A stretch of 64,000 nt of DNA from Monocercomonoides exilis PA203. Its lineage: Eukaryota; Protista; Preaxostyla. A model generated the notes under the pieces. It searched no databases, had not been told where the DNA came from, and saw nothing but the letters and a program-made list of their open reading frames with translations. Where the stretch lies: contig LSRY02000077.1 of the NCBI GenBank assembly GCA_001643675.2, positions 1 through 64,000 of the forward strand, read 5' to 3'. Each line of letters begins with the position of its first letter. Positions within the stretch are counted from its first letter, which is position 1. Below, in pieces: positions 22,976-32,520 of this stretch. Position numbers and translations under genes: made by a program.

Positions 22976-25900
22976 ATGGAGAATTTCAATATTAGAAGAA
23001 AATTGATCCTCAACGCTCTCGAAAAGGTAAATGAATTTTCGCGAAACAAATGGGTCAACAATCGTATATTCGAGGCTCATGTCGAAGGGCACGAGGAGCA
23101 ACCCAAGAGCTTTATTACAACTCCAATGCCATACACTGATTCATTGATTTCGATCAATCGCGGCTATGCGCTTGTGCTATCCGATGTTATCGCAAACTAT
23201 CAAGCTCTTCGAGGAAAGAATGTCTTATTTTCATTGGATTTCCATTTTAGTGGAACAAAAATTCCTGTATGCAAAGGTTACACCTTGAAAAAAGATAATT
23301 CTTTAAAAAACTTTATTATCCAAAATTTTTCAAACACAAAATTATGTTTATGCTATATAGGCAAGAGCGAAAAGATTGGCCCAACACTTGGACAGAGAAA
23401 AGAGGATTGAGGCATCAAAATATCACACGAATAACTTTGAGACTTGCAATTGCTCATCTTGCACAAGGCTGCGAGATGAAATTTCTGCGGAAAATGAGCG
23501 AAAAGTTTATGATATTGATGTATCTGAGTTTCTCCAGAAGTGCGGAATTCCTTATGAAAAATTTCCACTGTTTACTAATCCAACGCAGTGGTTGTTTTTC
23601 TTTTCAAAAGCAGCACGGGTATGATTTTTATTATTGAGTTATGCTGCATTTAAAGCTATCATTTTATCTGTTCATTAGCAAACCATCGATGCCCTTGGCC
23701 TTCGTGTAGACTGGCGCCGCTCGATGATTCTGTCAGGTTCAAACCCCTTTTTCCAGTCGTTTCTCAACTGGCAGTTCAAAAGCCTGCACGCCATGGGCCG
23801 TGTGATGCGGAAGATGCGCCCGCTGATCTGGTCGCTGTCTTCGAACCAGCCCTGCCTCGACCACGATCGGCTGAAAGGCGACGATGCTGTTCCTGTGGAG
23901 TCCTTGCTGCTGAAGCATCGGCTGATTGAGCTGCCTGAGAATGTGATGTTCTGCTCGATGCCAGCTGGAGAAGGTTAGGATTGATTATATATAGATTTAT
24001 TTATTCTATAATATGCTATTTATTTATTTTATTGATATTTCTTTCTTTCTTTCTTTCTTTCTTTCTTTATTTTCAATATATATTTTTTTGAAAACATTCA
24101 AACATTCATATAACCAAATGAAATCTTCCAACTCTCTCCCTCTTTTCTCTTTCTCTTTCTCTTTCTCTTTCTCTTTCTCTCTCTTTCACACACACACACA
24201 CACACACACACACACACACACACACACACACACACACACACACACACACACACACACACACACACACACACACACACACACACACACACACACACACACA
24301 CACACACATTCTCTCTCTCTCTCTCTCTCTCTTCTCTTCTCTTCTCTTCTCTTCTCTTCTCTTCTCTTCTCTTCTCTTCTCTTCTCTTCTCTTCTCTTCT
24401 CTTCTCTTCTCTTCTCTTCTCTTCTCTTCTCTTCTCTTCTCTTCTCTTCTCTTCTCTTCTCTTCTCTTCTCTTCTCTTCTCTTCTCTTCTCTTCTCTTCT
24501 CTTCTTTTTCATTGCTTTCCAATCTCATCTTCAATCAGATAAACGTCTCCAGCACATGCCCCACCTCTCCAAGCTTCTCTCATGTCGCCCTCACACTCTA
24601 TCTGAACTGGCTGAATGGTGCATCCCTTCTGGTGCTAATCAATCATCATCTTCTACTTCCTCCTCCTCCTCTTCCTCTTCTGAATGTGTTTGTTCCAATT
24701 CTGATACCCTTCCTCCCTCTCCTCCTCCTCCTCCTCCTTCTTCTTCTTCTCATTCTCCTTCTCCTCACAAAAAGAGCATCTTCTGTGTATCCTCCACCCT
24801 CCGCAGTGAGACCCTCTCCAACGAGGCAGCGCTGTGGGTAGCACCCGATGCCCAGCTGTTTGGCTACCAGACATCCGAAGAGGAGATTATTGTGTGCAGT
24901 GAGAGGGCAATGCGGAATGTGTTTGTGCAGCACTGCATGGCATTGGAGAAGGAAGGTGTGAATGTGGAGGAGCTGAGGGTGTTTGAGGTGAAAGGGAAGG
25001 GGCTGGTGGGGAAGAGGGTGGAGTCGCACCCGCTGAATGTGATACAGCAGGAGAGGAGGAGGAGGGAGAAGGAGAAGGAGAGGAGGAGGATGAGGGAGGA
25101 GGAAGAGAGGAAGGAGAAAGAGAAAGAGAGAGAGAAAGAAATTCAATTGGACAATTCACAATCACCAGCAAATTCAACCGCAGATCAATCACATGGACAA
25201 AATGAAGAAATTACTACATCGTCGTCATCATCATCATCTTCTTCTTCTTCTCCATCTTCCTCTTCTTCTCCCTCTTCTTCTTCTTCATTATCAACTCAAC
25301 ACCAACAACCTCCCTCAGAACTGGAGTGCGTGTGCGTTCCAATCCCAATCATCCCAGGGGCCTTTATTGACATCAACAAAGGGACAGGGTTTGTAGAAGG
25401 GTGTATTGGAGACAATGTGGAACAGCTGGCAGCATTCAGAAGGATGCTGAGTGAAGGAAAACAGAATGTGATGGGAGGAGAAGGAAGAGGAGAAGGAAGA
25501 GGAGGAGGGAGGAACAGAGGGAGAGGAGATGGAAAGGGGGAAAGTAAAGGAGAAGGGGTTGGATGTGGTCATAATGGCATTTCAAAGGGAGGGGTTATAA
25601 GCGAGAATAAAGAGAAGGAGAAGGAGAAAGAAAAGGAGAAAGAAAAGGAGAATATCAATATGGAACATTCGATTAAAGACACAAATGCATCGAATTCCAC
25701 TGAAAAAAAAGGGAAATCAACTAATTTCACAAACCCTGCTAATTCTTCTTATTCTTCGAACTTAGCAAAATTTTCTGATTTTTCTGATTTTTCTAGTTTT
25801 GAGAGCAAGTATTGGACAGAGCCTACGCTTCTTGTTCCTTCTGTTGATATTTCAGTCATTCTTCAGCACGAAAAGAAGAAAGAAGCGATGCGAAAGAGCA

Positions 25901-31900: not shown

Positions 31901-32520
31901 TGGGATATCCCTCTGCCCAGTCTGCCATGGGCACCATCACAGCCAACGGCACACTCGCTGTGACTGTCTCTGGCACTTCTCCGCCTTCCTTTGCGTATCT
32001 GCAGCCCAACAGCAGCTCTTTCTCTCGGCTAAGCTGCGTGGCGTGTGTGGTGTTTGTGCGGGACTCGCTCTCTGCCTCTCAGAAGAAAGTGATTGATGGA
32101 TTAGGGGGACGGTGGAGTGAGAACAAGAAGGAGGTAGACAGACTGCTGGTGGAGTCGTTCAGAGCGTCCTTTGGCGATGCAACGGCTGAGACGCAGATGG
32201 CGTTTGGGGTGTTTAAACAAGGGCTGAAGGACTTTGGGATTGAGGAGAGCTTGAAACTGCTGTCGGGAAGGAGGAGCTTTGATGTGTGCAGGGTGCTGCA
32301 GGAGAATGAGGAGTTCCTGAAGATGCGGAGTGTGGGGTTTGACCATCTGTTTGTGTATGCGTCGTCGAGTTGCTCGTCGCTGCCTTCCTTTTTGGGGAGG
32401 TTTGTGCATTTTGGGGCAGAGAATGTGGAGTGGGCGTATCCGATGACACCGTTTGTGGCTCTGTTCCACCCGACGGAGGCAGAGCTGGTGCAGCTGATGG
32501 CTGAAGGGCACTTCCATTGA
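22976..32520 (+). CDS. Leucyl-tRNA synthetase-like protein (eukaryotic cytosolic type), ~2,880 aa, degenerate active-site motifs
   Basis: Exons 22976-23266, 23361-23618, 23679-23973, 24539-28804 and 28988-32520 (all GT-AG, 8643 nt in frame). LeuRS blocks appear in order: PMPY..YQALRGKNVLF, LRVDWRRS, QPCLDHDR, TLRSET, KGTG, IEPLTDST, WYPVDVRV, WPRGVR, ISPICPHWSE. Confidence 0.88.
24187..24505 (+). repeat. Compound microsatellite (CA)n-(CT)n-(CTTCT)n in LeuRS-like intron 3
   Basis: Directly visible inside predicted intron 23974-24538. Confidence 0.95.

Follow-up and report, generated by a model that had tools for sequence, protein, structure and literature searches.

The window analysed here is a stretch of 64,000 nucleotides from Monocercomonoides exilis PA203 (contig LSRY02000077.1, positions 1 to 64,000 of the forward strand), a gut protist without a mitochondrion. 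Positions 22976-32520 of the + strand carry a gene whose giant product is homologous to leucyl-tRNA synthetase (LeuRS) and is devoid of the catalytic residues of the active enzyme, as is typical of a pseudo-enzyme. Judging from its sequence and from those of its relatives, the gene most likely encodes a retained, non-charging pseudo-enzyme rather than being a broken gene. It is probably one of three pseudo-LeuRS paralogues of M. exilis that were remodelled in a common ancestor and have been kept since then, and it may act as a non-charging regulator, sensor or scaffold that binds leucine and/or tRNA-Leu.

A six-frame search of the 82.3-Mb, 101-contig genome with the profile TIGR00395 (archaeal/cytosolic LeuRS, EC 6.1.1.4) identified an active-type paralogue alongside the window gene. 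This canonical LeuRS, located at C11:1201900-1206200, reaches 668.7 bits, above the cut-off of the profile, and carries HLGH, KMSKS and the editing motif GTGVVTSVPSDAPDD with an intact editing Asp; a second LeuRS with intact motifs is thus present and the window gene is not the sole LeuRS of the genome. An earlier note on this DNA had presented the gene as a catalytically dead paralogue. The paralogue part of this proposal is supported, but the gene is not a singleton: two more giant divergent copies were found at C56:285174-292000 and C16:1198870-1208924, the latter within an open frame of 3,154 codons. All three copies read TTPMPYTDSL-(I/M)-(S/T)-(I/L)-NRG at the HIGH site and K-D-x-H-(M/V)-(S/T) at the KMSKS site.

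Relatives in other organisms were sought with a profile of the KMSKS region built from the three M. exilis paralogues, which was run in an exhaustive HMMER search of 1.84 billion representative proteins. Among the top 150 matches, two long proteins and one fragment carried the family-type replacement of KMSKS, two further ones had an aberrant KMSKS region and all others had KMSKS or a mild variant; no other protein in these 150 clearly belonged to the family. Blattamonas nauphoetae contributes KAK2953501.1 (1,760 aa) and KAK2951337.1 (2,379 aa), both named "putative Leucine--tRNA ligase", and a third copy, P0151 (1,800 aa), was obtained by word search. The C56-type paralogue is represented in Blattamonas by a lineage-specific duplicate pair (JARBJD010000090.1 and JARBJD010000050.1) with 51% identity overall and 72% in the blocks. 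The fragment P0002 stems from an AT-rich genomic Logan contig of SRR13490894 (64-552); it has an intron whose position matches that of intron 4 in the window gene, and a still more degenerate KMSKS region, EGMKDKDNSSSSPIDNF. A scan of JGI metagenomes with the exon-1 alignment gave 132 pattern matches, none of which was confirmed, and a word search with Blattamonas P0001:1-460 returned nothing in the 253-805 aa range. The word search with residues 1015-1604 of window exon 4 found no relatives, a blank that is uninformative as low-complexity words swamped the candidates.

The functional residues compared were those of the human LeuRS structure paper (PMC7229842). Human numbering was transferred with rhinoceros LARS1 (P0153) as a ruler, which was checked to reproduce the human positions, and local domain alignments were merged for the comparison of sites across paralogues. 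In the window gene, the HIGH site (human H60-H63) reads SINR (23150-23161), within the family motif TTPMPYTDSL-x-S/T-x-NRG, the KMSKS site (human K716-S720) reads DSHMS (28564-28578) and the CP1 editing motif reads GTGFVEGCIGDNVEQ (25381-25425), with Gln at the position of human D399, which corresponds to D345 of E. coli. These are the replacements that the earlier note had listed, and its translations proved exact. H60S/T, G62N, H63R, D399Q, K716D/T, K719M/V and D676H are found in all six paralogues; Y54, H251, T293 and L594 are retained in all six and S597 in five of them. The leucine pocket of the window gene, tested at Y52, Y54, H251, L594 and S597, retains the last four of these residues. 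At Y52 the window gene has Met, and the canonical LeuRS of M. exilis has Phe there.

The pattern extends beyond the signature motifs. Among 104 near-invariant canonical columns, 38 are retained in all paralogues, 38 are mixed and 28 are altered in all. The 28 columns altered family-wide cluster at the adenylate and editing sites, and at several altered columns a single new residue is invariant (N56D, G62N, H63R, P87S, D399Q, R575H, D676H). Furthermore, no part of the family is better conserved than the block around the HIGH site (62% mean column identity), and the exon-1 block TTPMPY-x-DSL is invariant in six out of six paralogues. Because the changed columns cluster at both sites and the HIGH-site block is the best conserved one, the alignments indicate that the adenylation and editing sites were remodelled once and then held by purifying selection, not eroded. 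The description of both sites as erased, given in the earlier note, is therefore right in that the catalytic and editing residues are gone, but it misses that conserved new ones (S/T-x-N-R, D-x-H-M/V-S/T, Gln399, His676) have taken their place.

A tree was computed under LG+C20+F+G4 from 460 alignment columns, all of them from single exons. It unites the six paralogues in one clade (support 100/100), which is placed between an archaeal group that includes Fervidicoccus and the eukaryotic group. Within this clade the window gene pairs with Blattamonas P0013 (support 88/83), and the C56 copy groups with the remaining two copies of Blattamonas (75/72). The editing motif is near-identical in the window gene and P0013 (GTGFVEGCI-G/S-DNVEQL), in agreement with their pairing in the tree. 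Combined, the pairings, of moderate support, and the shared editing motif suggest that at least one duplication seems to be older than the split between Monocercomonoides and Blattamonas. A topology in which the paralogues and the canonical LeuRS of M. exilis were forced into one clade was marginally rejected (p-AU, from the approximately unbiased test, 0.034), long branches making this test unsafe.

Rates of substitution were also compared. Between the window gene and Blattamonas, non-synonymous divergence (dN) amounts to 0.56 over 573 codons and synonymous divergence (dS) is saturated and undefined. For the closest Blattamonas pair, LWL85 gives a ratio of 0.21 at a saturated dS of 1.88 and NG86 is undefined. 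Both comparisons, being saturated, are taken as weak support. It is the retention of the frame and the conservation of the derived residues, not dN/dS, that indicate that the gene is kept by selection.

The gene model was assembled by hand from the sequence, splice sites being inferred from GT-AG borders, frame continuity and homology, and homology searches were run one exon at a time. The five exons on the + strand add up to 8,643 nt, or 2,880 codons plus a stop, which agrees with the ~2,880 residues joined in frame from five exons in the earlier note, and GT..AG borders are found in all four introns. Exon 1 (22976-23266) encodes the N-terminal half of the Rossmann fold (NF008957, 8e-19) and is followed by intron 1 (23267-23360; GTATGC..TATAG, phase 0). 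Exon 2 (23361-23618) is the equivalent of the LeuRS-specific insertion (LSD1) and aligns with canonical SASAEKLKREI...HWVNYF; intron 2 (23619-23678; GTATGA..TTAG) is also in phase 0, and the gene for Blattamonas P0013 has introns at the same places as introns 1 and 2. Exon 3 (23679-23973) contains the VDWRRS...QPCLDHDR block of the CP core, with His251 and Asp252 retained (TIGR00395 4.9e-17, model positions 127-208). Intron 3 (23974-24538; GTTAGG..ATCAG, phase 1, 565 nt) is nearly all (CT)n/(CA)n/(TCTTC)n microsatellite, and its acceptor at 24537-24538 is the sole nearby AG that puts the frame back. Exon 4 (24539-28804; 4,266 nt) encodes the CP1 editing domain, CP2, the second half of the catalytic fold and the KMSKS loop, with LeuRS blocks broken up by four long low-complexity inserts. 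After the AT-rich intron 4 (28805-28987; GTTTGT..TTTCAG, phase 1), exon 5 (28988-32520 including the stop) carries a long acidic/Ser-rich insert, a helical anticodon-binding-type domain and a C-terminal domain.

The exons match TIGR00395 in colinear order, as the earlier note had stated of the LeuRS blocks from N- to C-terminus: exon 1 at model positions 7-78, exon 3 at 127-208, exon 4 up to 668 and exon 5 at 745-819. The scores of 45, 61, 151 and 21 bits sum to ~280 bits, far below the curated cut-off of 648.5 bits. In Pfam, tRNA-synt_1 is matched in exon 1 and Anticodon_1 in exon 5. Within exon 4, a CP1 block (24742-25026) that includes the Thr-rich editing region IFCVSSTLRSETL retains T293, R295 and E297. 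Downstream of the editing motif, a Ser/Asn/Pro-rich insert of 524 residues (25465-27036) lies between human positions 412 and 452, a site with an insert in six out of six paralogues. The conserved block that follows (27037-27450) is predicted to be mostly ordered and comprises the end of CP1, the CP core and CP2 (human ~452-588). It is separated by a Ser/Glu-rich insert of 99 residues, predicted disordered (27451-27747), from the IEPLTDSTLY block (27748-27828), in which the leucine-pocket residues L594 and S597 are both retained. Another insert predicted to be disordered, 137 residues long (27829-28239), occupies the LSD2 position and precedes the second Rossmann half and the SC fold (28240-28773), where WYPVDVRVVGRHLL contains D676H and DSHMS stands at the KMSKS site; this segment matches the human LARS1 structures 6KIE, 6LPF and 6KID with E ~2e-13.

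In exon 5, the helical anticodon-binding-type domain (30616-31329; PF08264 1.4e-7) consists of two blocks, 30616-30885 and 31102-31329, which were recovered with independent E-values of 7.9e-6 and 1.4e-13 by a hidden Markov model (HMM) derived from canonical LeuRS only. The C-terminal domain (32041-32361) weakly matches the LeuRS C-terminal tRNA-arm-binding domain, with an independent E-value of 0.04 for the canonical-only HMM and of 3e-4 for an HMM that includes the Blattamonas paralogues. Two other open reading frames (ORFs) of the window were recorded. The ORF at 43598-55228 (+) has 3,876 codons and no Pfam match at E <= 1e-4. The ORF at 7419-10733 (+), of 1,104 codons, matches tyrosine recombinases (Phage_integrase) below the threshold, with 24 bits, and could be a mobile element resembling Cryptons or DIRS.

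About one third of the protein can be aligned to LeuRS; the remainder is rich in Ser, Glu, Asn and Pro, and Ser makes up 18% of all residues. The positions of the inserts recur across the paralogues: in CP1 (human ~364-371 and ~412-457), before the L594 block, at LSD2 and after the SC fold. In an AlphaFold model of 27037-28773, the predicted local distance difference test (pLDDT) score is 75-93 in the blocks and below 50 in the inserts, and the best matches of the model in the PDB are human and Pyrococcus LeuRS. The inserts, located in surface loops, probably serve as disordered linkers or as regions of interaction. Giant insert-laden proteins seem to be a general habit of M. exilis, since a TOR-like gene, recognised by its FRB domain at C57:219909-220199 (-) with 59.5 bits, also lies within a 5,713-codon open frame.

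We propose that the family derived from a LeuRS of the archaeal/eukaryotic type. In the common ancestor of Monocercomonoides and Blattamonas, the residues for ATP binding and for the adenylation transition state (HIGH, KMSKS and Asp676) would have been replaced together with the editing residue Asp399, and selection would then have preserved the new residues, the whole scaffold of domains and the greater part of the leucine pocket. The resulting protein would neither form leucyl-adenylate nor charge tRNA; instead, it may act as a regulator, sensor or scaffold that binds leucine and/or tRNA-Leu through the kept leucine pocket, CP1, and the helical and C-terminal domains. Canonical eukaryotic LeuRS has a leucine-sensor role towards Rag GTPases and TORC1. 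A leucine- and/or tRNA-Leu-binding regulator or scaffold is our best guess for the window protein, and such a role is plausible because the leucine-sensor role of LARS1 is separable from catalysis (PMC5622079) and because duplicated archaeal LeuRS bind tRNA but do not charge it (PMC9437257). A role in nutrient sensing is a guess. That the LARS1-Rag mechanism has been copied directly is unsupported: TOR is present, but no Rag GTPase was clearly found in the M. exilis genome, where Gtr1_RagA, a family that also matches in an archaeal control, gave one partial 32-bit match.

Several points weigh against a retained non-charging protein. The loss of activity is deduced from motifs alone; some class I synthetases, among them some ArgRS, function with an atypical KMSKS, and Arg63 or His718 could in principle provide charge. 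The exon junctions are those inferred from GT-AG borders, frame and homology. Saturation of dS leaves dN/dS uninformative in either comparison, that of the window gene with Blattamonas and that within the closest Blattamonas pair. The structural model has a poor global fit (predicted template modelling score, pTM, 0.45; TM 0.25), as is expected of a fragment.

An unlikely but coherent alternative is that the family has become a new enzyme. The remodelled pocket (Asp56, Ser60, Asn62, Arg63, His575, His676, Asp716, His718), along with the retained leucine pocket and the domains that bind tRNA, would then carry out ATP-independent chemistry, for example with Leu-tRNA-Leu as leucyl donor. Cyclodipeptide synthases use aminoacyl-tRNAs as donors. 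Within class Ia there is the precedent of the IleRS homologue SbzA, which transfers an amino acid from aminoacyl-tRNA (PMC9437257). New chemistry would also account for the altered active-site positions being fixed as polar or ionisable residues in six out of six paralogues and for the HIGH-site region being the most conserved block of the family; however, the conservation of the remodelled site suits a role in binding only equally well, and there is no biochemical or contextual pointer to a substrate. The bolder form of this idea, a new class derived from class Ia whose pocket needs no ATP to read Leu-tRNA-Leu or leucine plus tRNA and which would serve as leucyl-transferase or as sensor of leucine or of tRNA-Leu charging, with three paralogues predating the split of the genera, appears doubtful to a similar degree.

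It is very unlikely that the gene encodes a strongly divergent synthetase that is still active, on leucine or another substrate, and binds ATP with substitute residues. The whole LeuRS architecture and most leucine-pocket residues are kept, as would be expected of such an enzyme, but no member of the family has kept either His of HIGH, either Lys of KMSKS, Asp676 or the editing Asp, a canonical LeuRS coexists in the genome and the TIGR00395 scores of the exons remain far below the cut-off (~280 versus 648.5 bits). The annotation of the Blattamonas relatives as putative Leucine--tRNA ligases would speak for activity, but these database names are automatic. A decaying pseudogene, or a model stitched from unrelated low-complexity open frames, is the least credible explanation and hardly to be reckoned with. 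Two thirds of the length are of low complexity, and such sequence tends to lack stops in more than one frame; antisense ORFs reach up to 285 aa, and the gene model comes from the DNA sequence alone. Nevertheless, the coding frame of exons 4 and 5 contains no stop in 2,597 codons; the other five frames contain 24-78 each, and shuffled sequences 66-71 on average. The LeuRS blocks follow one another in the correct order across five exons, the genes of Blattamonas are colinear with it and share intron positions, and family-specific motifs are conserved in two genera. A young pseudogene, which the earlier note had set as the alternative to a retained gene, is opposed by the occurrence of the same replacements in five other genes of two genera, all with multi-kilobase open frames.

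With the gene read as a retained non-charging paralogue, M. exilis and Blattamonas would share a family, with three genes in the former, in which adenylation and editing residues have been exchanged for conserved new ones and the leucine pocket and tRNA-binding modules have been kept. If binding of leucine or tRNA-Leu proves true, the family would provide a natural experiment splitting LeuRS signalling from catalysis in a eukaryote that lacks mitochondria. The name "Leucine--tRNA ligase" given to the Blattamonas proteins is probably wrong, and such a mistaken name will propagate by automatic annotation. We found no description of oxymonad LeuRS paralogues in the literature, and no LeuRS-like protein with a role outside translation is listed in the 2022 review of synthetase duplications (PMC9437257).

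Compared to human LARS1 (6LPF/6KID) and yeast Cdc60, the window protein has the same order of domains, i.e. Rossmann halves, CP1, CP2, SC fold, helical domain and C-terminal domain, with 28-32% identity in the blocks and the leucine-pocket residues Y54, H251, L594 and S597 in common. The leucine-sensor role of LARS1, separable from catalysis (PMC5622079), sets a precedent for a LeuRS scaffold with a job other than charging. The window protein differs from both enzymes in the replacement of HIGH, KMSKS, Asp676 and Asp399 and in being 2.5 times longer due to its disordered inserts. Among other synthetase folds that no longer charge tRNA, the HisRS-like domain of GCN2 and HisZ are now tRNA or ligand sensors or regulatory subunits. 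They have class II folds, other architectures and known partners, whereas no partner is known for the window protein; HisZ is listed in the review of synthetase duplications (PMC9437257).

Closer to the present case, Sulfolobaceae LeuRS-I and haloarchaeal LeuRS2 are likewise second LeuRS beside a housekeeping copy. They show little or no aminoacylation and are thought to have extra-translational roles, possibly through tRNA binding (PMC9437257; PMC4005665). Sulfolobaceae LeuRS-I still forms leucyl-adenylate and has a disrupted CP1 (PMC9437257). In the window protein, by contrast, other residues stand in place of the adenylation motifs, and CP1, although remodelled, is still there with its Thr-rich block, so that the protein is not of the LeuRS-I type. 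The oxymonad family also differs from the archaeal duplicates by its independent eukaryotic origin and by its three members. A eukaryotic parallel is SLIMP, a paralogue resembling seryl-tRNA synthetase in animal mitochondria, which has an ablated active site and is retained by selection beside the active enzyme (PMC10570016). SLIMP and the window protein are thus both eukaryotic synthetase paralogues that have lost their active site and are kept next to an active enzyme; SLIMP is a dimeric class II protein of mitochondria that pairs with SerRS2, whereas LeuRS is a class I monomer and M. exilis has no mitochondrion.

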